From Macrostomum lignano (lineage: Eukaryota), in NCBI GenBank assembly GCA_002269645.1, contig NIVC01002541.1:124001-188000 (forward strand): a stretch of DNA of 64,000 nt. The letters are read 5' to 3'. Numbering within the stretch: position 1 is the first letter of the stretch; each line of letters begins with the position of its first letter. This document shows, one piece after another, positions 3,674-64,000 of the stretch. The notes beneath the pieces are model-generated. The model was not told the origin of the DNA. It was given only the letters and a program-made list of their open reading frames with translations, and did not search any database. Made by a program: the position numbers and the translations under genes.

Positions 3674-6140
3674 CTTACCCAATGCCCGATTTTATATCTA
3701 TTCAAAATATCTGTAAGATGGCAACCTACGCAAATATCGCATTTCATCTTTGAACATCTGAGCTCCTGGATCACACTTTTTTATGTGTAACCATTAGAAA
3801 ACTAAAAATCTCCCGCATGTAAATACCCAAGCCTAAACATCCCAAACCTAAACGTCCCACAGCCTAAACACCCGCACCTAAACGTCCCACAATCTAAACA
3901 CCCGCACCTAAACGTCCCACAATCTAACCACCCGCACCTAAACGTCCCACAGCCTAAACACCCGCACCTAAACGTCCCACAATCTAAAGACCCGCACCTA
4001 AACGTCCCACAACCTAAACACCCGCACCTAAACGTCCCACAACCTAAACACCCGCACCTAAACGTCCCACAACCTAACCACCCGCACCTAAACGTCCCAC
4101 AATCTAAACACCCGCACCTAAACGTCCCACAATCTAAACACCCGCACCTAAACGTCCCACAATCTAACCACCCGCACCTAAACGTCCCACAATCTAAACA
4201 CCCGCACCTAAACGTCCCACAATCTAAACACCCGCACCTAAACGTCCCACAATCTAAACACCCGCACCTAAACGTCCCACAATCTAAACACCCGCATCTA
4301 AACGTCCCACAGCCTAAACACCCGCACCTAAACGTCCCACAACCTAAACACCCGCACCTAAACGTCCCACAATCTAAACACCCGCACCTAAACGTCCAAA
4401 AATCTAAACACCCGCACCTAAACGTCCCACAATCTAAACACCCGCATCTAAACGTCCCACAGCCTAAACACCCGCACCTAAACGTCCCACAACCTAAACA
4501 CCCGCACCTAAACGTCCCACAATCTAAACACCCGCACCTAAACGTCCAAAAATCTAAACACCCGCACCTAAACGTCCCACAATCTAACCACCCGCACCTA
4601 AACGTCCCACAATCTAAACACCCGCATCTAAACGTCCCACAGCCTAAACACCCGCACCTAAACGTCCCATAACAAAAAAACCACAAAACTACTAGCCTCG
4701 AAACTCCAGCAGACTCAAGCCTCATCCATCTGCCTCCCACCTCCGCAGGCTGCTCCGGCGGCACCGTGTACGCCTGTCCCGTGACGCAGCCGCAGCGCCA
4801 GCCGTCACCCAGCGGCTCCGCTGCCCCGGCCGACGGCAGCCCCCGCCAACTCGAAGCCGCCCTGGCCTCGCTGGAAGTGCCCGCCACCTCCGTGGTCCTC
4901 AAGGAGCGCCTCGGCGGCGGCAAATTCGGCGAAGTCCGCCTGGCCGAGTGGACGCCGGCGCCCGCTGCCGACTCGCCGGCGCCGCCCGGCCAGCCGCTGC
5001 TCGTGGCCGCCAAGACTCTCCGCAATCCGGGTGCCAATCCGCAGGCGGCCGAGGATTTCCGACGCGAGACTCGAACCCTGGCCCGGCTGCGTGATCCCAA
5101 CATTGTCCGAGTGCTTGGCGTCGTGTCCGGGTCGGACCTGTGCGCCGTGCTAGTTGAGTACATGCAGCACGGGGACCTGCACCAGTTCCTGCGGTCCCTG
5201 GGCACCGGCGGCGGCCCGGAGCCGCCCCTGAGCTACGGCTGCCTGATGCACATGGCCGCTCAGGTGGCCAGCGGCATGGCCTACCTGGAGTCCGCGCAGC
5301 TGGTCCACCGCGACCTGGCCGCCCGCAACTGCCTGCTAGGCGAGGCGTTCTGCGTCAAAATCTGCGACTTTGGCATGTCGCGGCCCATCTACTCTGCAGA
5401 CTATTACCGGCTGGACGGCTGTGCTGGGCCCCTCCCCGTGCGCTGGATGGCCTGGGAGGCCCTGCTGCACGGCCGCTTCACCATCGCCAGCGATGTCTGG
5501 AGCTTTGCCGTCACCGTCTGGGAGCTGCTCACCCTGTGCAGGGAGCAGCCGTTTGCCGGCCTCACCGATGAGCAGGTTTGTTGCTATGGGAAGCTGGATG
5601 CGCGCTCGAGCTTGCCGAACTCGATATTCACCACATCACCAATTCATTTGCCTCCTCATCACTCCCATCTCCCTTCTCTACCCCCCTCTCTCTCCATCTC
5701 TCCCCTCTCTCAATCTCCATCTCAATCTCCCCCTCTCCCCCTCTGTATCTCATCGGTTGTCCTCTTTAATCGTTTTTTATTTCTTTCGGTCCTTAACTAC
5801 TTTTTCCGTCCAAAATCCAGCGCTTGAAAGCACTACTCTCTCTTGCTACCGTTAGTAGGAATGCCAGCAAATTTGAAGTATTTCTTTAATTGCATCAAAA
5901 ACCCGCCACGAACTCAAGGTGGTTGACAACTGCCATCACATTCTGCTCTGCGACGGGGCCGCTCAGCCGCTGCCCTGCCCGCCGCTGTGCCCGCGCGAGC
6001 TGTACGACCTGCTGTGCCAGTGCTGGCAGCGGGACGAGGGCTGCCGGCCGCGGTTCCGCGACATCCGCGCCTTCCTGCAGAGCCGCGACTGCGGCTACAC
6101 CGCCAAGGATGCCAGCCTGCTGAGACGGCGTCGCTCTTGA
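1561..6140 (+). CDS. DDR: Discoidin domain receptor tyrosine kinase, 3' part (TM, juxtamembrane, kinase); 5' exons lie left of the window
   Basis: Exons 1561-2433, 4749-5575, 5919-6140 with consistent phases (1,1,0). TM helix LMYIAIIVAILLGALALMIVIGVLCV. The spliced junction gives LNLQGCSGGTVYA (cf. DDR NLQGVTGGNTY). Kinase motifs [46 protein letters not shown] are DDR-type. The last acceptor is AAG. Confidence 0.93.
2460..2987. repeat. 16-bp minisatellite (CCATCTACCTGCCAAT), DDR intron
   Basis: Tandem units seen directly. Confidence 0.9.
3826..4670. repeat. 30-bp minisatellite (CCCGCACCTAAACGTCCCACAATCTAAACA), DDR intron
   Basis: Tandem units seen directly. Confidence 0.95.
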
Positions 6141-45594: not shown

Positions 45595-48500
45595 TCACAG
45601 CGATCCCCGAATCAGGTTGCCATCATCGAAGCTGAACTGCACCGCCTTCTTGCCGCCTTCAGCCACGGCAGCGACAGCCGCCGACGTGGCCGCGGTGGCC
45701 AGACGAACGCCGCCGACTCGGCGACGCCGCCTAACCGAGGAACCGGCACGGCGGGGCACGTCGACGCCCAACTGATCGTCGCCCGATTCGTCATCGGCGG
45801 CGCCGGCATCCATGTCGTCGTCAACGCCGCCGAATAGCTCGGGATCGCTAAAGTGCTGCGGCTCATCCTGCAACGCACCGTCGCCACCGACACCGCTGCC
45901 GATGATGCCGTTGTCGACAGCGTCGTTCTGCTGGCTGCCAGCCGGTATTTTATCGCCATTTTCACCGACATTATCGTCGTAATCTTCGTCGGAGTTGCTC
46001 GTCGAACTGCTGGAATCGTCGTCAAGGCAACCGTCCGACCACACTACCGGGCTTCTCCGTCCGAGTCGTTTAGCGCCAGCCGGGCACCTCGGCCGCCGCT
46101 GCCGCCTCCGCCGCCGCCAGCGGGGTTGTCAATGCGGCAGAGCATCTCGGCCAGGTCGGTGAAGCGCAGAGAAGGCGGCGCCTGCTCCTCCGGCGCGGTG
46201 GCGGCCACGGCTGCGGCGGCGGCCGCTGCGGCGGTGGCAGCAGCATTGGGATTGGTTGAGGATGCCAGGGGATCGGACTGTTGGCGGCTGATCTGCAATG
46301 GCCGAAGTCGGGATGTTCGGTAATTCGGGAGGATGTTCGGGAGGTTGCAGGTAACACAGGTAGAATAGGAAAGAATTTACTCGCCAAAAAGTCATCAAAA
46401 AGTCGCCTAAGATTAAATTTCAAGGGTTTTTATTGTGTGCGACTCTGAAACGACTCCGGGGACCGTAGACTCGTGTCTGGAGTCGCTAAAGAATCGCTGA
46501 GTTGCGTCTAAAGCGCATCTGCGTCACTTTAATGAATCAGAATCGCATTTCAGATTTTTAACAACTCAATGGTAGAAAGTTGAGCGCTAATACGACTTTT
46601 GGACGACTTTTTAGGCACTCTTACGATTCTGCAACTCACACGATGCCCTAGTGACTCAACAGTCGCCTCTCAGTCGCATTGCAGTCGCCCATCCTCGCAT
46701 ATATTTGCCCACACCAATCATTAGCAATCTGAAGTTACCAACAAGCCGCACAAAAGGTTGAAAAGAACACATTACCAGTCAGAGTAGCCACAAACTTGGG
46801 GCCTGTTGCAATGCTTGCTTGCTCCCAAGGTACAGCTTGTGTTAAGCACAATATCATGAAAACTCACCTGTCGTTTAAACACCGGCAGCTTTTTAGATCG
46901 GCTCCACTTGGTAATGGCGTCCAATGCGTAGCGATAGCCGACCTGGTAGATTTCTTCAAACGAGCCGAATTGCAGAGTGGCGTATCGTTCAATTGGCGGC
47001 CGCAGGTATTCGCACAGGCCGTCAGATTTCACGCGCTCCAATTGGCGAACGCAGGACACGTACGCCAGACGGGACTGGATCTCGGTCAGGTTCGGCACGT
47101 TCACCTGATTGGGCGAAGTGATGCATTACACAACCTGATTGCGAAACTTAGCTAAGACAATGGAACAACTGCTGTCCTAAATAAGCTAATTGAGCTCCAG
47201 TGTGACATAGATAAGCTAATTGAGCTCCAGTACAGGTAAGCTAATAGAGCTCCAGTACAGGTAAGCTAACTGAGCTCCAGTGTGACATAGATAAGCTAAT
47301 TGAGCTCCAGTACAGGTAAGCTAACTGAGCTCCAGTGTGACATAGATAAGCTAATTGAGCTCCAGTACAGGTAAGCTAATTGAGCTTCAGTGTAACACAG
47401 GTAAGCTAATTGAGCTCCAGTGTCACACAGGCAAGCTAATTGAGCTCCAGTATCATACAGGTAAGCTAATTGAGCTCCAGTGTCACACAGGTAAGCTAAT
47501 TGAGCTCCAGTGTCACACAGGCAAGCTAATTGAGCTCCAGTATCATACAGGTAAGCTAATTGAGCTCCAGTGTCACACAGGTAAGCTAATTGAGCTCCAG
47601 TGTCACACAGGCAAGCTAATTGAGCTCCAGTGTCATATAGATAAGCCAATCAAGCGGGTGTCACGGGTGAGCTAATTAAACAACAGTCGCATATAGCCAT
47701 GCATCAAACTAAATAGACGGAGAAGGTCGCACCTTGGCGGCAAACGGATTAATCCGCTTGTACAGCAGCCACCAGCCGGACAGCTCGTCTCCATAATTAG
47801 TCAAATTAGTCTCATCCTGCGACCCGACATCCACAGCGAAGATAGTAGACGGGGCAAACTTAGTTTTCATCACATCGGCCGGCAGGTTGTTGACGTAGCC
47901 GCCGTCTAGGAGCAAGTTGCCGCTGGCCGGGTCGCACAGGGGCGGCAGGTAGCCGCTCAGAGACATGCTGGCTCGAACGTAGCGCCACAACGAGCCGCTG
48001 GTGTGAACTCGCATCTGCGATTTAGTAATATCAGTAGTGATGCAGAAATATGGCAGCCACAGGTCCTCGATGCAACGATCGCCAAACACAGATTCGATGC
48101 CGCGGTTGAATGCCCGGCCAGTGAACATTGCAGTCTGAGGATAGGTGAGATCCACCAGCTTGTTCCACAGCGAGCTCATCTCTTTAGAGAACTGCCGAGC
48201 CCTGGCTTCGAAGCCTTCTAGACGGGTCTCCTCAGCCCACAGGGCGCCCATGAACGAGCCGATGCTGGTGCCGCCAACCATGTCGATGGGGATGCCGTGC
48301 TCAGTGAGTGCGCGCACAATGCCAACGTGAGCGATGCCTCTGGCGCCGCCGCCGCCCAGTACCAGGCCTACCGCTGTGTTGGTGACCACTCGGGCCAGAC
48401 GGGAAATGTCCGACATCGGGTCTGGCGGCTCGGCGAATACGCGTCTGCGGAGGCGAGATTGCTGCTCATTGTTGGGGCTGATCAGAATCATGAGCAAATG

Positions 48501-50133
48501 GCATTTTGGGGGCAGAGGCTGGGGTAGTTGATGTACATTTGTGGGCAGAGACTGGGGTAGGTGTTAATACATTTGGGGGCAGAGGATGGGGTAGGGGTTA
48601 ATGCACATTTGGGGGCAGAGGCTGGGGTAGGGGTTAATGTACATTTGGGGGCAGAGGCTGGGGTAGGGGTTAATGTACATTTGGGGGCAGAGGCTGGAGT
48701 AGGGGTTAATGTACATTTGGGGGCAGAGGCAGGGGTAGTTAATGTACATTTGGGGCAGAGGCTGGGGTAGGGGTCAATGTACATTTGGGGGCAGAGGCTG
48801 GGGTAGGGGTCAATGTACATTTGGGGGCAGAGGCTGGGGTAGTTAATGTACATTTGGGGCAGAGGCTAGGTAGGAGTAAGTGTACACCCGGGGTAGGAGT
48901 TCAAGGAAAGGAAAGGCGGTAGAGTCGCATCTTAGTCGCCCCCCCCCCCCCAGAAGGCAAACTCAGAGCAAACCGAGAACAGCAATGTAGACAAGGCGAT
49001 CACCTGTAAACCTCGAGCAGCCGGCTGGAGCTGGCACCGGCTCCGGCGCCGCGCCTACGGCTAAACATTCGACGCGGGGCGCGCACGTGCAGGTGCTGTT
49101 GAATCACCAGACGATTGTCACCGAGGGGCTCGGAGGCGCGACTTAAAAACTCGCCAGTTTTTCCTGCAGTGGGCGCGTCGTTATGTCAATGTCTCAATGG
49201 TCCGTTCATTAAAATGCACTACTGACTGTCTGTCTGCCTGTCTATCTATTTAGGTCAAAAAGTCCACTGTGACTGCAGGAATGTGGTGTATGCCATTATG
49301 TGCAAGACTTGCAATGACCGCTGTATCTACGTAGGTGAGAGAGGAGGCGCTCTTAAAGTCAGACTTTAAGCTCACCTGAGCGACATCAGACTGGCTAAGG
49401 ACACCCCAATCTCCAGACACTTTCGGTCACCAAACCACAGTATTCACGACCTCCGCTTTATGGGTCTGTGGTACCTCAGTACTGAGTGCCTGGCCACTAA
49501 AGAGGGCGCTCAACGCAGGCGAGGAATATGGAGCAGAAGCTCATCGCTTTACTACAGACTCAGACTCCAGCAGGCTTAAACATCGTCATCACTGAAAAAG
49601 ACGCCTGCATCCCAATTGTGATCTGTTTCACGGACCACTCTGGGCGAGTTGTTCATCAAATTCGCACGGCCATTTCGAACCACGCTGCAGAGCTGGATAC
49701 GGTGGCTGCCTATACTCGCTCTCGCTCATTAAAGGACATTCTATGTCCATCCAACCTGCCCGCCGGAACTAATGGTCAGTCTCGAAACTCAAACCTCTTT
49801 TCTGATGAGCACTAGATGTACAGGTGTACACACGCATTGCAACGTAACGCTCCAACCATATTGATCATTTTATTTTACACGTGGTTTTTTATATACTCAC
49901 TATAAATACTCAACTCTGTTTTAATTTACCCACTTTCACAGATTTTTATTTACAATATACCCTGACGAAGACCCGGTTCGGGTTGAAAATTTGTTTTTTT
50001 TCTTGGAATTTAATTGGAGAAATTGTGACTTTGCTTCAACTGTATGCGTGGTTTCCTTTCGCCTTATCTATTTATCTATCTATCTATCTATCTATCTATC
50101 CATCTATCTATCTATCTACAGTGTATCTATCCA

Positions 50134-50172
<39 letters not shown>

Positions 50173-53100
50173 GTCTGCCCGCCAGTCTCACCAGGCGTGG
50201 GATAGAGCGTGCTCTCCTTATGCAGCAGAATGAGCATGTTGAGCACTCGGCAAGAATCGGGCAGCACTACCTGCCGCACGTGATCCATAGTTTCAACTCT
50301 ATCGCTGGCCAGAGCCACAATCAGCACACAATCGGCCTGCCGAATGCACCGCTTTGTCCAGGCGGTCTTGTCCAGGTCGCAGAGGTACAGCAGCAACCGG
50401 TGATCGTCCTCCTGCTGAGCCAGCCAGCTGGTGACCCGGTACTCCTGGTCGCGATCGAATGCTCTGCGACCGAATCGTTTGAGCATGATGCGGGAGTTGA
50501 GGCGCAGACTGGCCCCGATGGTTGACATGGCGTGCTGCAGCTCCAGGGAGAATGCTTCTAGGGGCACCTGGGGAAAATTGCAGATGAGAAATTTGAATGA
50601 TTGAATCGGTATCGAAATAACCTCACTCATTCAGCAGCCTCTCAAATAGCTTGGCTTCCATAGCTACCTCACTCATTCAGCAGCCTCTCAACCAGCTTGG
50701 CTTCCATAGCTACCTCACTCACTCAGCAGCCTCTCAATCAGCTTGGATTCCATAGCTATCTCACTCACTCAGCAGCCTCTCAATCAGCTTGGCTTCCATA
50801 GCTACCTCACTCATTCAGCAGCCTCTCAACTACTAGCTTGGATTCCATAGCTACCTCACTCATTCAGCAGCCTCTCAACTACTAGCTTGGATTCCATAGC
50901 TACCTCACTCATTCAGCAGCCTCTCAACCAGCTTGGCTTCCATAGCTACCTCACTCATTCAGCAGCCTCTCAACCAGCTTGGATTCCATAGCTACCTCAC
51001 TCATTCAGCAGCCTCTCAACTACTAGCTTGGATTCCATAGCTACCTCACTCATTCAGCAGCCTCTCAACCAGCTTGGCTTCCATAGCTACCTCACTCATT
51101 CAGCAGCCTCTCAAATAGCTTTGATTTTATAGCTACCTCACTCATTCAGCAGCCTCTCAAATAGCTTGAGCTATTTACCTTAGTGCTAGCTGGGAACAGG
51201 GCCACAGAACGCAGGTTGGACATTGGCAAACGGTACAGCTCGAACTCTCGCCCAGTCCTAGACTCAGGATTGTCAACAATATTGCCAAGAAGCCATTGCG
51301 ACACCAGAGTGGTGAGTCGGGTCACTATATACGGATGACGCCGCTTGATGTTGTCCAGCAGGTCAACCGGGATGGCGGCCAGCTCGCTGTCCCGTACGGC
51401 CAGCACGGTGGTGGCTCTGGGCCTGGTGGTGAACACTTCTAAGAAACCAACCAGATCGCCCCTGCCCAGCTCGGCTGTGAGCTCCTTGTGACCCTGAGGA
51501 GTTGTGTGTGCCTGGCGAAGGCGGCCGTGCAACAGCAAGTAGACAGCGTTGGCGATGTCGCCCTGCAAGGCGGAGAATAGCCAGATAGCAGTTGTGTACT
51601 TTTAAATAGACTGGACTTCAGCTTAGATAATAGTTATTAGCTGAATACTAACCGCAATCAACTCTGCTTAACTTGGAGGTGCTAACTCGTGTCTAGAGTC
51701 GGCTGTAGAATCACTGAGTTGCGTCTAACTAAAGCACATCTGCGTCGCTTAATGAAGAAGAATCGCATTTCACATTTATAGCAACTCTATTTAGTCTACT
51801 TAAGTAAGTAGAAAGTTAAGCGCTAGCACAACGACTCTTAAACGACTTTTTCTACGGTCTTAAAGCTCACGTGATGCCCTAGTGACTCAACAATCGCCTC
51901 TCAGTCGCATTGCAGTCGTTTGAGTCAGTCAAAAAAGTCACAAGAGCCGGCCCAGAGTTGCCTGAGTCACTACTGAGCTGTTTTCAACGGGATATGCTTT
52001 TACACTACTGTCAGTAGTTTTAGCCAGGGAAAATATTTCTGGTAGGGCTAGATCGCAAGTTTTGGGCTTCCTTATAATTATCGAGCAGTTGAAGCTCTGG
52101 GTAAAGAAAAATTGCCAGTCTTGGAACTTTGTAAGCCGAACTAAGGCAGTTAGAAGAAGTAAGGTAAGACTGGTGAAAAGGTTAGGGAATGCGTAAAACT
52201 GTTAAGGGTAGTCTATGCCTAATTTATATTGCACAACTAAGAGTTAACTATTGTAAGAACTATTGCATGCTTAAATCCTACATTTTTTTCGTTTTACATC
52301 TTTGGAGTAAATAAAAATATTTGGGTGTCCTGACTCAATTCTTTGATCTCTAAGTATCTAGGATTAGAGAAATCACGAGCCTGGTAGAAGCAATCTACCA
52401 AAACTCAAACCAGTTATAATCCATTAAGCATAACAATAACAAGCAGTAGCCTAAGCCGCAAACCACACTTCCATAAATATTTCCAAGAGCCTAACCTGCT
52501 TATAGAGCGGCTTGCCAGACTCCAGGCAGAGCCAGTCCAGCACAAAGTCCACCTGTCTGAGAAACGGCGACAGTCGTCTAACAATTAAACTGGCCAGTGG
52601 CAGCACCAGACTGGGCTGGGCCCGCATCAGGGCGTAGAAATCCCGGCTGCTGATGGCGGCCACGCAGGCGTCGGCTTCGCAGCGGACGGTGAAGAGCGAC
52701 GCCTCGCCAGTGAGAATAGCGATCATGCCGCAGAGCTCGCCAGGACCGGCCGAGTAGAGCAGACTGGAGCCCTGGTAGCCCTGGAGCGCGGGATGAAAAA
52801 TCATATGGAAGGCTAGCAGGGGTCAGTGGCAACGTGATTCAAGGGGTCAACAGGGTTCAATGATAGATGGAGTAACGGAGTTCAATGGGAAACGCTGATC
52901 AATTGGTTATGGGTAATGGTAATGGGCTCAATGGAACAAAAGGAGCTAAGGGGTTAACGGGGGTCGAAGACAAAAAAGGTCAAAGGGATAACGGGGGTTA
53001 AGGGGACAAAGGAGCCAAGGATTTAACGGGGGTCCAAGACAAAGAAGGTCAAGGGGGTAACGGGGGTCAAGGGGACAAAAAGGGTCAAAGGGGTAAGAGG

Positions 53101-54741
53101 TCAAGAGGACAAGAGGTCAAGGGGGTAGGGGTCAAAGGGGTAAGAGGTCAAGAGGACAAGAGGTCAAGGGGGTAGGGGTCAAAGACGTCCCGTTCATGGG
53201 CTCATGGGTAACGTCAGTCAAGCAATGCTCAAGAAAGGATGACTCTGATAGGGAGAGCGAATGCTGAGGTCACTCATAATCACAAATGTAATTGAGACCC
53301 GTGTCCAGACAGTTCGCAGAGGAACAGCCCACCTGCTGCGTCACAGCCAGCCTGCCAGTGACAACATAGAACAGCGTAGGCAAATGCTCGCCCTGCTTGG
53401 CCAGCTTGGCGCCGGCGTGCACATTCGCCAGGCTGACCCGACCGTCCAGCAGGCTGGCATCGGACAGGCCAAACAGCTCGGCCAGGTCAGCCTGGGCAGC
53501 GGACAGCAGCTGCTCCTGACGGGCCGCCTCCGAGTCTTCTGGGCCTGCGAAAATAAAAAAACAGTTGGGTAATTGACTGTCTATGGACACACCCGGTTCC
53601 GACACTGCCCACAAACTCGACATTCCAAAACTAGCTTTCGACACACGACACTCCGACATTATCCGACACACTCAACATTTCGACATTCCGACAAAATCTA
53701 TCGACACATTCGACATGATCAATCGACACACAAAACAATCCGACACTCGACATTCCGACACTATCCATCGACACTCGAGATTCCGACATTATCCATCGAC
53801 ACTCGACATACCGACGCTATACATCGACACTCGACATACCGACACTATCCATGGACACACTCGACATTCCAACACTATCCATGGACACACTGATTCTGAT
53901 TCTGATCCCCGCGCAACAAATGTAGATGAGGGAAATCCTTACCATCCTGATCCTGTCGCGGTCTTCGCTGCTTCCGAAGTCGTTGAAAAGTGACAGGCGT
54001 GCCATCACGTCCGGCTCGCTGCTGCTGCTGCTGCTGATGCCGCAGGCGGTGCTGGTGATGCCCGACTCCGCCGCCACCGCTGCCAACAATGCGCGGCGCC
54101 TCGCCCATAGCCAGCAGTGACCGGTCGCCCGAGCTTGCTCCGGCGCCGCCCTTTCCGTTGCCGTCCAATTCGCTGTCGGAGTCCTCGCTATCCTCGCTAG
54201 TGAAGATGACACCCGGTCGGCCTTCGGTTCTATCCAAGTTTGTCGACGAAGCGCTGGCGGTCCGTCGGTGATGCTTCGACGTCCAGCGTCGGTCGTTGCG
54301 CCGCCTCCGCATGGCGGTCTCCTCGGCGGCGTCGAAGTCGGTGGGATCGCCTCGATCTGCCAGGCCCGAGTCGGAGCCGGCGGAATCCGCTGAGGCGGCG
54401 GTGGCAGACGGCGACTTCGACCGGGAGCGGCGGAACACCCGGATGGGAATGGCTGCCGACGGTGTGGGCGTCAGGACCGGTGGCGGCTTTGATGCCATCG
54501 GCACCGGCTGGGGCGCTGGAGTGCTGGAGCCGGGGGGGACGCCGGTTGCCGCTGCAGCCGAGGAGGCCAGGCTCAGCACCCGACAGCCGGATGGCGCATG
54601 GGAGTCTGAGCTGACCAGCTCGCTAGTGAGTCCTAGGTAGCCGTTAAGCGCCTGTTTTGTGCAAGTTATACAGGCTGTAATAAGATACGGATGGCAGACA
54701 GACAGACCGACACAAAGACAGAGACACACAGACAGGCAGAC

Positions 54742-54790
<49 letters not shown>

Positions 54791-54801
54791 GGCAGACAGA
54801 C

Positions 54802-54874
<73 letters not shown>

Positions 54875-55845
54875 CACGCAGGGCAAACTCACCTGAAAGG
54901 TGACCCGCTGCAGCCGGATGACAATAAGCTGCACCAGCCGCACCATGGTGAGCCGGTGCTGAGGCTTGGCCAGCAACTCGGCCAGCCGGCCGGCGGGAAT
55001 TCGCAGCACGCGGCACTCGGACGAAGCCACAACGGCGCGCAAAGATTTGAGCTTAGGCGAAGAACCAGTGAGAACTTCTAAGAAGCTGAGCAGAGAACAG
55101 ATTGAGTGATGCTCGCCGAACTCGTGAAACTGCTGCTGCTGCTGCTGCTCCAGCAGGAGGAGTCGAACCCGGCCCCGCTGCACAATGTACAGATCCCCGT
55201 CGGCGTCGCCCAAATCAAAGAGAGTCTCGCCGTGGCGCAGCTGCACAATCTCCAGGCATTTGCACATCTCCAATAGAAACGATTTCTCCAATCCGTCGAA
55301 TATCCTGAGCGACCGCACGGCCAGGTAAAACTCGTTCAGCATGGGCGGCGGCCAGGCGGAGTCGTCGTCGGCATCCGTTGGCTCCAGGAAATAGTCCGGT
55401 ATGCCGTCCATCAGCGATTGCCGCTGCCTCAGCTGCTGCTGCTGCTGCTGCTGGTACCGCTGGCCGGGCCTGAGCAGCTGCATCAGCTCGGCGCCCTGCG
55501 GCAGGCGCGGCATTGTGGGCAAGTTTGGCGCCGCCTGCCGCATCACGCGGCGCAGCCAGTAGCTCAGACGGTCGCGCTTGCGAAACGCCGACCTGGACGG
55601 CTGCTGCATCAGCGACGGATTGCGAAGCCTCGACCGGCCAGCCAGCTGCGGCCGGCCAGAAGCCGGTGCCCCCTGCTGCGCCAGCGGCCGACCGGTCGAC
55701 CAGTAGCGCCGATAAAAGTACAGCAGCAGTAGGGCGCCGGACAGGGTCAGCAGAGCGGTGAGCACCAGGGCGTCCTGGCCCTGCCCCAGCTGGGGAATCA
55801 GCCGGATTGGGAACGGCTGCAGTTGTTGGGGCGGGGCTGCGGAGT
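45595..55845 (-). CDS. PNPLA6: Neuropathy target esterase / swiss cheese (PNPLA6/7): TM anchor, three cNMP-binding domains, patatin domain; about 1580 aa
   Basis: Exons 55845-54893, 54651-53943, 53544-53333, 52780-52496, 51562-51179, 50567-50192, 49163-49004, 48444-47733, 47104-46868, 46292-45595, all phase-consistent. Motifs [44 protein letters not shown]. One base is missing near 46082-46084. The start codon is not in the first listed exon. Confidence 0.94.
46420..46690 (+). repeat. Dispersed GACTC/GAGTC-rich repeat family, copy 2
   Basis: Shares GCGTCTAAAGCGCATCTGCGTC, GAATCGCATTTCA and GATGCCCTAGTGACTCAACA.TCGCCTCTCAGTCGCATTGCAGTCG with 51685-51985. Confidence 0.75.
47185..47650. repeat. 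30-bp minisatellite (AGGTAAGCTAATTGAGCTCCAGTGTCACAC), PNPLA6/7 intron
   Basis: Tandem units seen directly. Confidence 0.93.
48505..48875. repeat. About 39-bp G-rich minisatellite, PNPLA6/7 intron
   Basis: GGGGCAGAGGCTGGGGTAGGGGTTAATGTACATTTGG units. Confidence 0.9.
49253..50060 (+). mobile_element. Degenerate Penelope-like retroelement 3' fragment (GIY-YIG endonuclease) in a PNPLA6/7 intron, antisense to the host gene
   Basis: Translation [25 protein letters not shown]...VRL*AHLSDIR...ISRHF..NH...(frameshift) [17 protein letters not shown] matches the PLE endonuclease pattern (VVY-YVG, R..EH, HF, E..I..L.T..P.GLN). In-frame TAA at 49367-49369 and a frameshift near 49520. Confidence 0.8.
49962..49993 (+). 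ncRNA. Hammerhead ribozyme-like core, probably degenerate
   Basis: CTGACGA, then stem II GACCCG-gtt-CGGGTT, then GAAA, downstream of the PLE endonuclease. No convincing stem I found. Confidence 0.45.
50625..51170. repeat. About 48-bp minisatellite, PNPLA6/7 intron
   Basis: CTACCTCACTCATTCAGCAGCCTCTCAACCAGCTTGGCTTCCATAG units. Confidence 0.93.
51685..51985 (+). repeat. Dispersed GACTC/GAGTC-rich repeat family, copy 3
   Basis: Block matches to 46420-46690 and to the reverse complement of 18230-18610 (AGTAGA.AGTTAAGCGC). Confidence 0.75.
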
Positions 55846-55911
55846 CTGCGTGGATTCAGTTTGCCTAGCAACTAAATCTAATCTTAACTAGACAACCTTA
55901 TCTTAACTTGA

Positions 55912-56632
55912 TAGAGTAAGTGGAACACAAATCTCACCCCCATAGAGTAAGCGGAACTGAAATCTAAACCTCATAGAGTAAGCGGAACTGAAATCTAAAC
56001 CTCATGGAGTAAGCGGAACTGAAATCTCAACCCCATAGAGTAAGCGGAACTGAAATCTCACCCCCATAGAGTAAGCGGAACTGAAATCTCACCCCATAAG
56101 AGTAAACGGAACTGAAATCTCAACCCCATAGAGTAAGCGGAACTGAAATCTCACCCCATAGAGTAAGCGGAACTGAAATATCAACCCCATAGAGTAAGCG
56201 GAACTGAAATCTCACCCCATAGAGTAAGCGGAACTGAAATATCAACCCCATAGAGTAAGCGTAACTGAAATCTCACCCCATAAGAGTAAGCGGAACTGAA
56301 ATCTCAACCCCATAGAGTAAGCGGAACTGAAATCTCACCCCCATAGAGTAAGCGGAACTGAAATCTCAACCCCATAGAGTAAGCGGAACTGAAATCTCAA
56401 CTCGATAAAGTAAGCGGGACTGAAACCTCAACCCCATAGAGTAAGCAGAGCTCAAATCTAAACCTCATATTGTAAGCGGAACTGAAATCTGACCCCATAG
56501 AGTAAGCGGAACTGAAATCTGACCCCATAGAGTAAGCGGAACTGAAATCTGACCCCATAGAGTAAGCGGAACTGAAATCTGACCCCATAGAGTAAGCGGA
56601 ACTGAAATCTGACCCCATAGAGTAAGCGGAAC
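55912..56632. repeat. About 32-bp minisatellite (CCCCATAGAGTAAGCGGAACTGAAATCTCAA)
   Basis: Tandem units seen directly. Confidence 0.93.
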
Positions 56633-56999
56633 ATAACAATTTAGTACACTGGAACTACAGCAGTTAATAAAGATTTATTTAAGAAAAAAACAAAATTTTG
56701 AAACACAGCCAAAAATTTTCTGACAATTTCAATAGGTAGTGACAAAGCTTTGAAAAAAAGTTAAGTAAAATATCATATATAAGAAGCTAAATGAACCACA
56801 CATTATGGAATGTATAACACACACACACACACACACGATATTACGAGTACAATACAATAGGAAGCACATACGCGATATAAGAATTAGGTTAGTTGATTGA
56901 GATTATAACATTTTACTCGCCATTTAAGCTTATGGTAATCTACTCGCATCTCAATTGATCCAGTAAGCAATGACAACTGCTTACGGGGAAAAAGTCTAT

Positions 57000-57290
57000 T
57001 TGAGGCGTTTTATTGTCTGCGACTCTGCAATGCCTCTGGGACGCTTCTTTAATGCCTCTGGGGCGCTTCTATAATGACTCTGGGGCGCTTCTATAATGCC
57101 TCTGGGGCGCTTCTATAATGACTCTGGGGCGCTTCTATAATGCCTCTGGGGCGCTTCTATAATGCCTCTGGGGCGCTTCTATAATGACTCTGGGGCGCTT
57201 CTATAATGCCTCTGGGGCCGTAGAGTCCTAGCTTCCTAGCTGAAGCCTGCCAGAGTCGCTGTAGAATCACTGAGATGCGTCTAAAGGGAA
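57000..57290 (+). repeat. Dispersed GACTC/GAGTC-rich repeat family, copy 4, with an internal 22-bp tandem expansion
   Basis: GAGGCGTTTTATTGTCTGCGACTCTG, then (GCCTCTGGGGCGCTTCTATAAT)n at 57045-57215, then GAGTCGCTGTAGAATCACTGAGATGCGTCTAAAG. Confidence 0.7.
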
Positions 57291-57532
57291 CTTTTTGAAG
57301 CACTTTATGAAGATGATCGATGAAAAAGCAGTTTAGTTGTGGATGCCCATGTTCGGTACCATGCTGCAGGATCTACAAGTAACCACTGGACTAGCGAAAG
57401 CAGTTGCCATTGAGTGCTGTGTTTTGCCGCAGTGCATCAAGTGAGATGAACCTGCATAAGCTTAAACGGGACGCAAAAGTCTAAATTATTATTTTGTGAA
57501 AGACAGGCCCAGCAAAGCAAAGGAAAATTCAC

Positions 57533-57563
57533 TGGGAATCCAAGTCTCTGAAGAGAACGCCAT
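57533..57563 (-). CDS. Tentative first coding exon of PNPLA6/7 (MAFSSETWIP)
   Basis: aaaaATGG context followed after 31 nt by a GTGAAT donor. Phase 1 matches the acceptor at 55846. No homology support. Confidence 0.35.
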
Positions 57564-57804
57564 TTTTGATTGGCGAAAACAACGTGAACTGCGTGAGAAA
57601 ACTGTAAATAAAAATGACAAGATGCTATGGTAAGAACTGACATAGGCAGAGCTGGAAACCGAAGTCAGGACACTACGCATTAATACAATGGAGATGGAAA
57701 ATTTGAATGATTGAGATTTTTTGGATAGAAAGTGCAAAAGGTTAAGAATAGACAATGTTGGGAAGCTAAAAATTGGGATTCATGAATAGGGAAGACGGTA
57801 GGAT

Positions 57805-58322
57805 CTGTGGGTGGGGAACAGCAGAATGGGATCTGTGAGTGGGGAATAGAATGGGATCTGTGAGTGGGGAACAGAATGGGATCTGTGAGTGGGGAACAGA
57901 ATGGGATCTGTGAGTGGGGAACAGAATGGGATTTGAGTGGGGAACAGAATGGGATCTGTGAGTGGGGAACAGAATGGGATCTGTGAGTGGGGAACAGAAT
58001 GGGATCTGTGAGTGGGGAACAGAATGGGATTTGAGTGGGGAACAGAATGGGATCAGTGACTGGGGAACAGAGTGGGATCTGTGAGTGGGGAATAGAATGA
58101 GATCTGTGAGTGGGGAACAGAATGGGATCTGTGAGTGGGGAACAGAATGGGATCTGTGAGTGGGGAACAGAATGGGATCTGTGAGTAGGGAACAGAATGG
58201 GATCTGAGTGGGGAACAGAATGGGATCAGTGAGTGGGGAACACAATGGGATCTGTGAGTGGGGAACACAATGGGATCTGAGTGATCTGAGAATGGGATCT
58301 GAGTGGGGAACAGAATGGGATC
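57805..58322. repeat. 25-bp minisatellite (GAATGGGATCTGTGAGTGGGGAACA)
   Basis: Tandem units seen directly. Confidence 0.93.
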
Positions 58323-58408
58323 TTAATGTAAGAATAATGGGGTGTGTATAGAATTAGCTAGCGGAGGACATTGTCACCAACAAAAGCAGCTCATGCAGTC
58401 ACACCCAG

Positions 58409-61400
58409 TTACTCCCCAGCAACCAAGGCGGCGGCAGGCCTCCGACCGTAGACCAGCACGCACGGTACAGCGAAGGCGGCCTCGTCAAAGACCCGACTAT
58501 CAGCCGACAGGCAGTCGACTCTGCCGTCTTCCAAACGGTGCCATCGACAGGCGCCGGCGTCGCCATGGCGACTGCGAACGTAAACAACGTATTGCTGCTG
58601 AAAGCATCGATAGCGCCAGGCAACGGCCAGCAGATCGTAGCAGTCAGAAGCAGAAGCAGCAGAACCTTCTTCTCCGCTGATTAACGGCGAAAATCCTCGA
58701 ATTGGGAAGTCCAAAACGGCTGCCCGATGGTGGCGGCAGTCTGCAAGGCGAATCAGCAGGACTGGCGGCAGCGGAGGCCGCAGCCGCTGGCGTCGGATGG
58801 CCCGCTGGCCGAAAGCGCCGCAGGACGGGCACAGCCAGGCCTGGCGCCGGTCCAAGCCGCTGCCCGGCCGCCACAGCTCGGACAGGCAGTCGGACAGGCG
58901 GACGCGGTTGCGGCTACGGACGGGGCCGGACTGGCACCGACTGGCATCCCAGTTGAAGTCTTGGGCGGACTGCAGTTGGCGGTTGGAATAGGGGCTGCGC
59001 TATTTATTGAGTTGGGAGCTTAAACAGCCCAAATGATAATCCATGAACTATCAATAGTGGAGCTTGGACTGGAGTCCCAGATTCCTAACTCACAGACATG
59101 GACTATCAATAGTGGAGCTTGGACTGGAGTCCCAGATTCCTAACTCACAGACATGGACTATCAATAGTGGAGCTTGGACTGGAGTCCCAGATTCCTAACT
59201 CACAGACATGGACTATCAATAGTGGAGCTTGGACTGGAGTCCCAGATTCCTAACTCACAGACATGGACTATCAATAGTGGAGCTTGGACTGGAGTCCCAG
59301 ATTCCTAACTCACAGACATGGACTATCAATAGTGGAGCTTGGACTGGAGTCCCAGATTCCTAACTCATGGACTATCAATAGTAGAGCTTGGACTGGAATC
59401 CCAGATTACCAATCCATGGACTATCAATAGTAGAGCTTGGATTGGAGCCCCGATATCTCCGATATCTTAAATAAGTTAAATCAAGGTAAGGATCCAAAAA
59501 TGACCCCCATGACAGATGAGTCGACACAAACTCACCCAGGACCGAACCTGAAACCATTCAGGCCTGGGCGGCGGCGGCGGCGGCGGCACCAGCAGGTCGT
59601 CGGCATCTTCGGTGGCAGCCCTCGGCACCGCGGCGAAATACTCTATAGCAGCCGGGCCGCCGCTCGATTCCCAGGTGTCGTTGAGATTTGAAAACGTGAC
59701 AGCCCGACAGTCTGTCTGATAGAAATCGAACTGGCAGTGCTCAAACAGATTAGCTAGCTCAGTTTTCAAGCTATTTAACCTGTCATTTAGGCTGGACAAG
59801 CTCACAGCCAATGGGAAAGCTGGCAGGCTTCCTACAGCACTGTACGCTGCTGATGCCATGTACACAATAGCGAGAATGTGGTCGCGAGTTCGAATGCAAA
59901 ACTGGACTGGTTGGACCAGCTCGTAACAGTACATAGAATCCTCCTGGTGCGGTAGGCCTAAAAAGTACAGGGATAGAGTTTAAACGTGATTTGATCAATT
60001 ATGATCCCCGCAACAAAATCGGGGATTCTGATCCCAGCAGCACTATTTGGGATTTTGATCCCAGCAAAATTATTAGGAATTTTGATTCCAGCGAAATTAT
60101 TAAGGGATTTTGATCCCAGAAAAACTGGGGATTTTGATCCCAAACACTATTTACTGGGGATTTTGATCCCGACAAAACTACTGGGGATTTGAGCCCAACA
60201 AAACTACTGGGGATTTTGATCCCAACAAAACTACTGGGGATTTTGATCCCAACAAAACTACTGGGGCTGGGGATTTTGATTCCAACAAAACTACTGGGGC
60301 TGGGGATTTTGATTCCAACAAAACTACTGGGATTTTGATCCCAACAAAACTACTGGGGGTTTTGATCCCAACAAAACTACTGGGGATTTTGATCCCAACA
60401 AAACTATTGGGGATTTTGATCCCGACAAAACTACTGGGGATTTTGATCCCAACAAAACTACTGGGGATTTTGATCCCAACAAAACTACTGAGGGATTTTG
60501 ATCCCAACAAAACTACTGAGGGATTTTGATCCCAACAAAACTACTGAGGGATTTTGATCCCAACAAAACTACTGGGGATTTTGATCCCAACAAAACTACT
60601 GGGGATTTTGATCCCAACAAAACTACTGGGGATTTTGATCCCAACAAAACTACTGAGGGATTTTGATCCCAACAAAACTACTGGGGATTTTGATCCCAAC
60701 AAAACTACTGGGGATTTTGATCCCAACAAAACTACTGGGGATTTTGATCCCAACAAAACTACTGGGGATTTTGATCCCAACAAAACTACTGGGGATTTTG
60801 ATCCCAACAAAACTACTGAGGGATTTTGATCCCAACAAAACTACTGGGGATTTTGATCCCAACAAAACTACTGGGGATTTTGATCCCAACAAAACTAATG
60901 AGGGATTTTGATCCCGACAAAACTACTGGGGATTTTGATCCCATCAAAACTACTGAGGGATTTTGATCCCGACAAAACTACTGAGGGATTTTGATCCCAA
61001 CAAAACTACTGAGGGATTTTGATCCCAACAAAACTACTGGGGATTTTGATCCCAACAAAACTACTGGGGATTTTGATCCCAACAAAACTACTGGGGATTT
61101 TGATCCCAGCAACAATTTGAAAACAAAATAAAGTCTGCATTACCAGCATCTCACCATAGTCTGTGTACCAATCGTCCGCAGAGAACACCCTAGCCACTTT
61201 GCCGTCAGTCAGTTGAGCCAACAGCAGACAGTCGGAACGAATCTGGATAAGTGTACAAAAATCTCAGTTTTCTATTGGCAGTCAGTATATCAACTAATCT
61301 CATAACGCAACAGCTACTGACCTCAAATTTTGCCCCAATCAGGGCGCACAGATCGCCTGCTTGGCCAGCAGTCGGAGCGTCGATTCGACAGCGCGTCGGC

Positions 61401-63987
61401 TGATAGCGTCGCCCGGTTGCCAATGGCAACGCCGGCACCAGACAGAAATGAAACGGATGCAGATTGGCAGATGGCAACAGTGAGTCGGTCGGAGAGTTCA
61501 GGCTGAGCTGCACAAACGGCTGGCAAGCATCGGACTGGTGGCCGCACTCACAGCATTCGGTGACGCACTGCAGCTGACCTGTGAACAGATCCGACACCAG
61601 TGTGACCGCCGCCGCTTCAGCGTCTGCCTCTCTGGGCGGCTGTTTCTTGGAAGCCGAGTGTCCGGCGGCCAGCTCCACATGGAGGCCATTCAGCAGGCAA
61701 GCCAGGTAATCCTTTTTGGTAGTAATTACAGTTTGAAACTTTATAAGCTCGAAAGTCTTGTCTGCAACTCTCACTAGAGCAGAGGTTCACATTGTTTTAA
61801 ATATTTAAACTGTCCGTTATATACAGATAAAGGTAGATCTTGTGAAGGGTAGATCCGTGAAGGTTAGATCTTGTAAAGTTTCTATATTGTAAAGGTTAGA
61901 TCCTGAGAAGATCAGATCTTGTGAAGGTTAGATCCTGTGAAGTAGGATGGATCCTGTAAAGCGTAGATCCTGTGAAGGATAGATCCTGTGAAGGATAGAT
62001 CCTGTGAAGGATAGATCCTGTGAAGGATAGATCCTGTGAAGGATAGATCCTGTGAAGGATAGATCCTGTGAAGTAGGATGGATCCTGTAAAGCGTAGATC
62101 CTGTGAAGTAGGATGGATCCTGTAAAGCGTAGATCCTGTGAAGGATAGATCCTGTGAATGATAGATCCTGTGAATGATAGATCCTGTGAAGGATAGATCC
62201 TGTGAAGGATAGATCCTGTGAAGGATAGATCCTGTGAAGCATAGATCCTGTGAAGGATAGATCCTGTGAAGGATAGATCCTGTGAAGAATAGATCCTGTG
62301 AAGAATAGATCCTGTGAAGCATAGATCCTGTGAAGATCTTATGAAATCCTTCATCTGATTAAAGACTTTGCTTTTCACGGATATACTCATAAAACTTGGC
62401 ATTGCCACTTCTCGACACAATATAAAGGATCCAATTAAAGAGATTGATAGTAAGAATGATTGTTAACGAATATTCAAAAAGTAAGAATCAATACATTTTT
62501 GCAAATAAGACAATCATGGTTCTCGTAGGAACTGAGCCCAACTCACAACGCATTCCAAAGACGCAGCGACAGAGTCAACTCTGCTCAACTCTTCTTTCTG
62601 ATCAGCGCAAGCCGACATTGTAGCCCGCAATTGGCGCATTAAGATTCGCCTAACAGCTCTGGCCGACACAAACTCGTACAGGCCGGAGGTCATTGCGCGC
62701 AGCAGTTCGCAGGTTGCGTCAGTCAGTGGACGACGACGACGACCAGCGCCGTCGCCTGCTGCGAAGGTTTGAGATTGCCACTGCCGGAATTAGAGTTGCT
62801 AGACTTGGGCATACTGTATCAGCTTATATTCTCAGCAAGCAACCCTACCAGGCGGTAGGACGAGCAGCTGATCGACCAAGCGCGGCACGCCGCACAGCAG
62901 CTGTAGAGCGGCGTTCAAAGCGCCAGCATCGGCTCCAGGATTGGATAGGCCGCAACAGCAGCCTGCGGGGAAGCGCAGTCAGTGAGTCAGTGAGTCAGCT
63001 AGTTGCTGAGTTAGTGAGTCAGTGAGTTAGTCAGTGAGTCAGTGATTCAGTGAGTGAGTCAGTGAGTGAGTGAGTGAGTCAGTCAGTCAGTCAGTCAGTC
63101 AGTGAGTCAGTGAGTCAGTGAGTCAGTGAGTGAGTCAGTCAGTCAGTGAGTCAGTGAGTCAGTGAGTGAGTCAGTGAGTCAGTCAGTCAGTGAGTCAGTC
63201 AGTGAGTAGTCAGTGAGTCAGTGAGTCAGTGAGTGAGTCAGTGAGTCAGTCAGTCAGTGAGTCAGTCAGTCAGTGAGTCAGTCAGTGAGTAGTCAGTGAG
63301 TCAGTGAGTCAGTGAGTGAGTCAGTCAGTCAGTCAGTCAGTCAGTCAGTCAGTCAGTCAGTGAGTCAGTCAGTGAGTAGTCAGTGAGTCAGTGAGTCAGT
63401 GAGTCAGTCAGTGAGTCAGTCAGTCAATCAGTGAGTCAGTGAGTCAGTGAGTGAGTCAGTGAGTCAGTGAGTCAGTGAGTCAGTCAGTGAGTCAGTCAGT
63501 GAGTCAGTGAGTTAGTGAGTCAGTGAGTAATTTTTTTATTAGAGGCAGGGGGTTGTGTGCACCCTGGCGCACTTTAAGCGACATAGGCACACAACCGGCG
63601 AGAGGCATTACTGCCCATTCCGCCGACTCCCCTGAGCAGGCATACAAGCGCGTGGATACGTACGCAGGCACACACTCACACAGGAGTGTACAGCGGCCCT
63701 AACTTTATATTATCGTTAGGCATGTACACTTCACTGCGCCTTGGGGGGTTGGCTCTCAAGGCCGTTAATTGCACGAGCAGAGCCAAGCCGAGATTCCAAT
63801 TAAGCCCCAAATTAATGTGACTGCACTTGGAATCGAGCCTGGGTCGCTGGCACACCAGAGCAGCTGCGCTACCGCTGGGCTACGGCCCCCCTTGAGTCAG
63901 AGTGAGTGAGTGAGTGAGTGAGTGAGTGAGTGAGTGAGTCAGTCAGTCAGTCAGCCAGTCAGTAAACGCACAGCTAGCCTGGCTCAT
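58409..63987 (-). CDS. USP4/11/15-like ubiquitin-specific protease homologue with degenerate catalytic triad (candidate pseudo-DUB), about 610 aa
   Basis: Exons 63987-63972 (tentative, may extend past the window), 62962-62849, 62758-62547, 61711-61322, 61242-61155, 59957-59536, 58999-58409; total 1833 nt, open frame. USP boxes: GLSNPGADAGALNAALQ, DYLACLLNGLHVEL, SDLFTGQLQCVTECCECG..PFVQLSL, VRLSDCL..WLCPSC, LPPVLLIRL, LDFP, YDLLAV, WHRLEDGRV, VLVYGRR. Confidence 0.82.
59047..59440. repeat. 55-bp near-perfect tandem repeat, USP-like intron
   Basis: GGACTATCAATAGTGGAGCTTGGACTGGAGTCCCAGATTCCTAACTCACAGACAT units. Confidence 0.95.
60055..61108. repeat. 27-bp minisatellite (GGGATTTTGATCCCAACAAAACTACTG), USP-like intron
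   Basis: Tandem units, each with a GGGAT..ATCCC hairpin. Confidence 0.95.
61835..62338. repeat. 16-bp minisatellite (GTGAAGGATAGATCCT), USP-like intron
   Basis: Tandem units seen directly. Confidence 0.93.
62977..63962. repeat. (AGTC/AGTG)n array interrupted by the SINE at 63531-63891
   Basis: Direct inspection. Confidence 0.93.
63531..63891 (-). mobile_element. tRNA-derived SINE, about 360 bp
   Basis: The minus strand begins GGGGGGCCGTAGCCCAGCGGTAGCG (A box TAGCCCAGCGG) with B box GGCTCGATTCC, has a non-tRNA body, and ends in AATAAAAAAA. It sits inside an (AGTG/AGTC)n array. Confidence 0.8.
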
Positions 63988-64000
63988 AGCAGGCAGCGGC

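Follow-up and report, generated by a model that had tools for sequence, protein, structure and literature searches.

USP4, USP11 and USP15 are ubiquitin-specific proteases (USPs) that have been studied for the autoregulation mediated by their ubiquitin-like (UBL) domains. Their catalytic domain has the thumb-palm-fingers fold with two zinc-binding CxxC pairs, is preceded by a UBL domain, and is divided into two parts, D1 and D2, by a second UBL domain (UBL2) and a disordered insert. All of these features are shared by the product of a gene on the minus strand of contig NIVC01002541.1 of the flatworm Macrostomum lignano (assembly GCA_002269645.1), located in a window of 64,000 nucleotides (positions 124,001 to 188,000 of the contig; all coordinates below are those of the window). 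The gene corresponds to GenBank PAA57052.1 (BOX15_Mlig026978g1, 'hypothetical protein, partial', 775 aa). Its product differs from the three enzymes in that it lacks the DUSP domain, carries Gly and Gln in place of the catalytic Cys and His, and has a rebuilt QQxD box and rebuilt blocking loops. It is therefore a candidate pseudo-deubiquitinase, which is probably maintained and acts in a non-catalytic way.

Other USP-fold proteins with missing or atypical catalytic residues are PAN2 (USP52), USP50, USP53 and USP54, whose status as pseudoenzymes is debated. All of them lie outside the USP4/11/15 clade; PAN2 combines WD40, USP and RNase domains, and USP50 consists of a minimal USP domain. USP53 and USP54 differ from the flatworm protein in that Cys and His are retained and that they are active K63-directed deubiquitinases (DUBs) (PMC12037411). 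USP39 and yeast Sad1 are alike in having a USP fold without the catalytic Cys and His, and function as a structural component of the U4/U6.U5 tri-snRNP (small nuclear ribonucleoprotein complex; PMC10919355). However, USP39 carries a ZnF-UBP domain at its N-terminus and has neither UBL domains nor an insertion, and it is ancient, occurring from yeast to human, whereas the flatworm gene is seen in one flatworm species only and comes from another USP clade. As a model, the JAMM pseudo-DUBs (KIAA0157/Abraxas2, CSN6 and RPN8) are also comparable, with a dead paralogue that pairs with an active relative and activates or scaffolds it (PMC5106787), but these have an unrelated metalloprotease fold. In its way of working, the flatworm protein would resemble USP39/Sad1 and the USP domain of PAN2, but it stands outside their families, as clade, architecture and phyletic range differ. 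A literature search returned no paper on this gene or on any USP4/11/15-derived pseudoenzyme. A preliminary description of the locus had called the protein undescribed, which holds for the literature; the sequence itself is already public as an uncharacterised entry in GenBank (PAA57052.1, PAA94770.1 and PAA50909.1) and as UniProt fragments (A0A1I8IEN9 and A0A1I8HGI4).

The stretch compared with the assembly (50001-64000) is 100% identical to the contig. Read from stop to stop, the minus strand between 58409 and 64000 is a series of open segments with GT-AG borders, and threading PAA57052.1 onto the locus gives an exact fit with eight GT-AG exons, seven of which are found in the window. Approximately 170 residues, including the first UBL domain (UBL1), are encoded past position 64000 by exon 1 and 168 nt of exon 2; what remains of exon 2 in the window, its 3' end (63972-64000), encodes ...PLPAMSQAS according to the threading. 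Exon 3 (62849-62962) carries the degenerate Cys box CCCCGLSNPGADAGALNAALQ, recognised by phmmer against USP15 and by MAFFT alignment. Exon 4 (62547-62758) encodes the thumb helices, with the ubiquitin-tail box QQxD(S/A)QE replaced by SRVDSVAASLECV. Exon 5 (61322-61711) covers the end of the thumb (DYLACLLNGLH), the first zinc pair, the strands of the fingers and the start of the UBL2 insertion; a tblastn search with USP15 gives a high-scoring segment pair in this region, at 61705-61265. Exon 6 (61155-61242) encodes the middle of the UBL2 beta-grasp domain, followed in exon 7 (59536-59957) by its end and a low-confidence, probably disordered central insert with a poly-Pro run. Exon 8 (58409-58969; coding 58969-58412, stop codon 58411-58409) contains the second zinc pair, the blocking loops, the His box and the Asp box.

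Once spliced, the exons form a single frame of about 600 codons without any internal stop, compared to 19 and 22 stops in the other two frames, which bears out the stop-free frame of the preliminary description. Two points of it had to be corrected. The ATG at 63987, taken as the start, encodes an internal Met (63987-63985), because the gene continues past the window end with exon 1 and most of exon 2. In addition, the last acceptor was placed at 58999, whereas the transcript-based model has 58969, so that the earlier frame was 10 residues too long; acceptor 58999 was rejected as the transcript-based protein is reproduced only with 58969. The G+C content is 60% in the exons and 44% in the introns.

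According to the description of the assembly, its GenBank models derive from a genome-guided RNA sequencing (RNA-seq) transcriptome (StringTie, TACO) and de novo assembly, and transcripts with low expression were filtered out (PMC5730564). Because the annotation was built from an RNA-seq transcriptome, the splice model is transcript-based and the locus is transcribed. The first ATG is located 16 codons into the 'partial' coding sequence and gives a product of 759 aa starting with MDSNLADS. The 5' end of the annotated transcript, just beyond position 64000, coincides with a TTTCCAG acceptor-like site, with in-frame stops directly upstream. This acceptor site is compatible with spliced-leader trans-splicing, which is frequent in M. 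lignano (PMC5730564).

The encoded protein matches the Pfam UCH profile PF00443 (peptidase C19) over profile positions 1-241 of 254 with an E-value of 1.1e-9 and 38.8 bits, well above the gathering cut-off of 23.9. Using phmmer against the PDB, the best relatives are the catalytic domains of USP15, USP4 and USP11, with E-values of 3e-10 (USP15) to 8e-8. In a HMMER search of 1.84 billion representative proteins, three matches fall below 1e-10, all of them M. lignano models of the same gene family, followed by USP11, USP4-like and USP15-like proteins at 3e-9 to 1e-6. Next to these sequence comparisons, an AlphaFold2 (AF2) model was built on an alignment with 30 canonical USP4/15 proteins. It has a mean predicted local distance difference test (pLDDT) of 63.6, a predicted template modelling score (pTM) of 0.56 and a core pLDDT of 70-90. 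Its top Foldseek matches in the PDB are USP11, USP15 and USP4 (E 3e-14 to 1e-12), with target-normalised template modelling scores of 0.52 for USP11 and 0.65-0.72 for USP15 and USP4. There are 180 PDB matches with an E-value of at most 0.001, and the best 50 of these 180 are nearly all USP catalytic domains. Spliceosome chain 8y6o_U (minor pre-B complex with a tri-snRNP part; protein unnamed in the output) is among the matches with an E-value of 1e-8. As modelled, the three-dimensional thumb-palm-fingers fold is kept. The best non-Macrostomum sequence matches, PDB sequence matches and structural matches are all USP11, USP4 or USP15, in agreement with the USP4/11/15-like subfamily initially proposed; this placement is based on best sequence and fold matches.

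PAA57052.1 is an apparently Macrostomum-specific and very divergent member of the USP4/11/15 clade. Its identity to USP4/15 is around 25%, compared to approximately 45% or more among canonical members across phyla. Across 29 canonical USP4/15 proteins, 272 positions show a conservation of at least 90%. Of these, 91 are kept in the flatworm protein (33%), among them the four zinc ligands and many Leu, Trp, Tyr, Pro and Gly residues of the core. The lost positions concentrate in the catalytic and ubiquitin-tail-binding elements. Five representative matches without a Cys-box or His-box motif by regular expression were looked into as further pseudo-USPs and turned out to be fragments or truncated models. 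When a mixed alignment was used for a profile search, nearly all matches were the M. lignano copies and nothing new emerged, apparently because low-complexity acidic words filled the candidate list.

The residues at the active site were located with three independent alignments, namely phmmer against USP15 and MAFFT with 7 and with 29 canonical proteins. All motifs quoted in the preliminary description are indeed found on the minus strand where it had placed them. The Cys box GLSNPGADAGALNAALQ (62901-62951, exon 3) aligns as GLSNPGADAGALN with the canonical GLSNLG-NTCFMN. The nucleophile position is occupied by Gly (codon 62922-62924), preceded by a one-residue insertion, and the oxyanion Asn of the box ('SNPG') is retained. 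In the AF2 model, helix alpha-1 starts at Ala-Gly (A22/G23), which replaces Thr-Cys. The His box VAWRYRCFQQQYVVYV (58577-58624, exon 8) is part of a rebuilt stretch of blocking loop 2 and His box, VAWRYRCFQQQY, in which Gln is found at the His position (codon 58592-58594). Here, AWRYRCF-QQQY aligns with the canonical SNHYGGMGGGHY; the Gly-rich blocking loop 2 now reads R-C-F-Q-Q, and the modelled strand after this loop starts at the Gln that replaces His.

The Asp box reads WHRLEDGRV (58517-58543) compared to the canonical WYYFDDSSV, such that FDD aligns with LED, with Glu at the third position (58529-58531) and Asp at the fourth (58526-58528). In the AF2 model, this E-D pair occupies the hairpin turn held by D-D in USPs. 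USP15 depends on the acid at the fourth position (D880), while it can do without the canonical third one (D879) (PMC10867860). The claim that all three catalytic residues are replaced is hence formally true but overstated, because E-D replaces D-D and USP15 needs the second Asp: the substitutions of Cys by Gly and of His by Gln stand, while the third is a conservative change from Asp to Glu next to an Asp that is kept. Since Cys and His are gone, the question of the third or fourth acid is moot. The structure prediction suggested as a check at the time likewise puts Gly and Gln at the Cys and His positions.

The elements which engage ubiquitin have changed as well, as had been noted before. 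The QQxD box, FSGYQQHDSQELL in canonical proteins, is replaced by ELSRVDSVAASLECVDYL and is lost, and 7 residues are inserted where exons 4 and 5 join. Blocking loop 1 is 6 residues shorter, with LADCRHHRAA aligned to the canonical LKRFSYSRYMRDKLD, and this region reads IRLADCRHHR at 58703-58753 on the minus strand. Based on these residues, no ubiquitin hydrolysis would be expected at the canonical site. The rebuilt QQxD box and blocking loops 1 and 2 would probably weaken or abolish the grip on the C-terminal tail of ubiquitin in the canonical cleft.

A protein with such an active site could nevertheless still be an enzyme, either with a relocated nucleophile (one of the Cys residues of a CCCC stretch before the Cys box, or the Cys in blocking loop 2) or with another activity or a UBL substrate. 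This is taken seriously because USP53 and USP54, earlier labelled inactive, were wrongly called so and have been reclassified as active (PMC12037411), and activity has also been claimed for USP52 (PAN2) and USP39 (PMC10919355). Besides these precedents, the retained oxyanion Asn and E-D pair and the new Cys residues close to the cleft (a CCCC run ahead of the Cys box and RCF within blocking loop 2) fit a residual or altered activity. However, both the nucleophile and the general base are gone from the canonical site, and the alignment shows no His gained beside the new Cys residues. Moreover, the channel for the ubiquitin tail is rebuilt with bulky residues and a 6-residue deletion, and there is no positive evidence of activity. 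An enzyme of this kind is consequently considered quite unlikely.

It is very improbable that the altered boxes are an artefact of annotation or assembly, with an mRNA that uses other exons or with boxes that result from sequencing errors. The assembly is PacBio-based and redundant, and in the older ML2 predictions, the gene is in fragments or merged with its neighbour, which would be in line with such an artefact. On the other hand, identical substitutions are present in three separately assembled loci, and the changes are multi-residue replacements, unlike single-base errors. The gene model is also guided by RNA-seq (PMC5730564). Alternative exons with canonical Cys and His boxes, which would have contradicted the preliminary description, were found in no frame of the locus: a six-frame scan by regular expression of the locus and 1 kb on either side gave no canonical Cys, His or Asp box, and tblastn with USP15 hit the annotated exons only, without any hidden canonical exon.

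In terms of domain architecture, the protein consists of UBL1 followed by a USP domain, into which UBL2 and a disordered loop are inserted. The zinc ribbon of the fingers is intact, as stated initially: both CxxC pairs are invariant in the alignments (C339, C342, C634 and C637; P0001 numbering), with CCEC at 61544-61555 in exon 5 and CPSC at 58820-58831 in exon 8, both on the minus strand. The central insertion of the USP4/15 type had also been reported as kept, and it does align with the UBL2 of USP15, USP4 and USP11. UBL2, located between the two halves of the catalytic domain, is modelled by AF2 as a beta-grasp domain (pLDDT 80-92), and the central insert that follows it, with the poly-Pro run, has a pLDDT below 50 (residues 353-437). 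UBL1, outside the window, keeps the USP4/15 signature RLW...GQ...E...G-WPR and is modelled as a beta-beta-alpha-beta-beta fold (residues 32-131, pLDDT approximately 70-85). The Pfam profile PF14836 gives no significant match to UBL1, and its support comes from the alignment and the structural model. For the DUSP domain, PF06337 gives no match, and the 34 conserved columns of the DUSP region are gaps in the family alignment. A DUSP exon was not found by tblastn within 10 kb upstream, and in-frame stops are present just upstream of the transcript 5' end at all three loci of the gene. Two defining features of USP4/11/15 are thus missing, the DUSP domain and the catalytic dyad.

The M. lignano DV1 genome is highly redundant and a hidden polyploid, with 180 Mb in blocks that are at least 95% identical (PMC5730564). 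The gene is found at three genomic loci. The homeologue PAA94770.1 is 97% identical to PAA57052.1, from which it differs by 29 synonymous and 27 non-synonymous substitutions. This corresponds to a dN of 0.016, a dS of 0.051 and an omega of 0.31 (Nei-Gojobori), with an excess of synonymous substitutions over the neutral expectation (binomial p = 2.3e-5). The dS is near the divergence of short introns between the homeologues (0.04). Both internal indels between them are whole codons. The last approximately 120 residues (653-771), in which blocking loop 1, the His box in its degenerate form and the Asp box are located, have no non-synonymous substitution versus seven synonymous ones. A frame of 775 codons that stays open at approximately 25% identity, together with the omega and indel results, argues for purifying selection that maintains the fold of the protein and not its catalysis. 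Between the homeologues, the N-terminal part with UBL1 (codons 1-184, most of which lie outside the window) has a dS of only about 0.007, versus 0.065 for the USP domain, a contrast that gene conversion between the homeologous copies might explain.

If the gene were a duplicate that is transcribed but has no function and is degenerating into a pseudogene, the catalytic loss would be decay tolerated through polyploid redundancy, and the open frame a residue. The redundancy of the genome is consistent with this, as are the many family-conserved positions that are altered. It would also fit the third copy, PAA50909.1, which is almost identical to the copy in the window and has a 1-bp deletion in a TTTCCC run of exon 7 (around 59815); the deletion shifts the frame, and the GenBank model ends at 499 aa. 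If this deletion is a real disabling mutation, it shows that loss of a copy is possible; as it falls in a T3C3 run of a PacBio assembly, it may instead be a homopolymer error. Neutral drift down to approximately 25% identity would however bring stops or frameshifts, while two copies with 5% divergence at synonymous sites both have an open 775-codon frame. Furthermore, the selective retention of the zinc ligands and core residues, the in-frame indels and the departure from neutrality (p = 2e-5) all speak against decay. This agrees with the preliminary description, which had held that the gene is not decayed, and ongoing pseudogenisation is regarded as unlikely.

Several points also weigh against a maintained, non-catalytic protein. 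The frameshifted third copy is one of them. No orthologue outside M. lignano was found in the 1.84 billion representative proteins, which would equally suit a decaying duplicate. Because of this, the estimate of constraint comes from one pair of young homeologues and only 56 substitutions. The omega of 0.31 is moderate. The AF2 models are only moderately confident, and their alignments are dominated by canonical USP4/15 sequences. A search of the literature and supplementary tables yielded neither an expression level, a tissue nor protein evidence; the gene identifiers Mlig026978, Mlig027673 and Mlig010851 are absent from the searchable papers and from the supplementary tables of PMC5816591 and PMC12896417. 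Finally, a duplicated active USP4/15-like gene that diverged fast may have given rise to this gene, but a canonical USP4/15 gene of M. lignano was not identified: with the best invertebrate match, a barnacle-like protein, as query, no Macrostomum protein was present among the 120 matches listed.

As a maintained pseudo-deubiquitinase, the protein might serve as an interaction scaffold or adaptor through the palm and fingers surfaces of its USP domain and its two UBL domains. It may also compete with, or modulate, partners of an active USP4/15-type enzyme. A specific scaffold or decoy mechanism is a guess, made by analogy with KIAA0157 and USP39. It is quite possible, and put forward as a tentative proposal, that this is the first pseudoenzyme of the USP4/11/15 clade, a DUSP-less UBL-USP(UBL2) protein selected as a non-catalytic regulator, for example as a decoy or allosteric partner of an active USP4/15 or of its substrates.

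With regard to the surroundings of the gene, each long intron and the downstream spacer are largely filled by a different tandem array. Within the introns, these arrays have units of 8/12 bp at 62977-63528 (AGTCAGTG), 16 bp at 61830-62335, 27 bp at 60021-61112 (approximately 40 copies) and 55 bp at 59042-59451. In the downstream spacer, the units are 25 bp (57801-58323) and 22 bp (57029-57218). Intron lengths differ strongly between the homeologous loci, with 444 versus 1197 bp for intron 6 and 1390 versus 566 bp for intron 7. Intron 2 contains a tRNA-derived SINE-like (short interspersed nuclear element) segment at 63540-63890 with GC-rich arms and the end ...GCTGGGCTACGGCCCC, in which ARAGORN identified no tRNA.

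The downstream neighbour on the same strand, at about 47700-55770, is an NTE/PNPLA6-like gene with open reading frames for cNMP-binding (54644-55765) and patatin (47709-48497) domains, both on the minus strand. The same NTE/patatin gene follows the USP-like gene at each locus, so that the pairing is conserved at 3/3 loci, and an older ML2 prediction, UniProt A0A1I8FDS5, fused the two genes. Elsewhere in the window, a long exon open reading frame on the plus strand (4766-5827) encodes a protein tyrosine kinase domain (PF07714, E 4e-65) and is unrelated to the USP-like gene.

Most enzyme families have gained pseudoenzymes through gene duplication and the loss of catalytic residues (PMC5106787), dead paralogues are frequent in large families, and another USP-fold pseudoenzyme is unsurprising because USP39 and PAN2 are already known. 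The scope of the finding is narrow, since only one species is known to carry the gene. What sets the gene apart is its parent clade, as a naturally dead, DUSP-less and selected version of USP4/11/15 could reveal scaffold surfaces with a role independent of catalysis. The question is testable, given that M. lignano is amenable to RNA interference (RNAi) and transgenesis. For annotation pipelines, the gene is a warning against taking every 'USP domain-containing protein' for a protease. If the proposal of a non-catalytic regulator derived from this clade is true, M. lignano would offer a natural experiment that shows the functions of the USP4/15 scaffold and its UBL domains once catalysis is gone.

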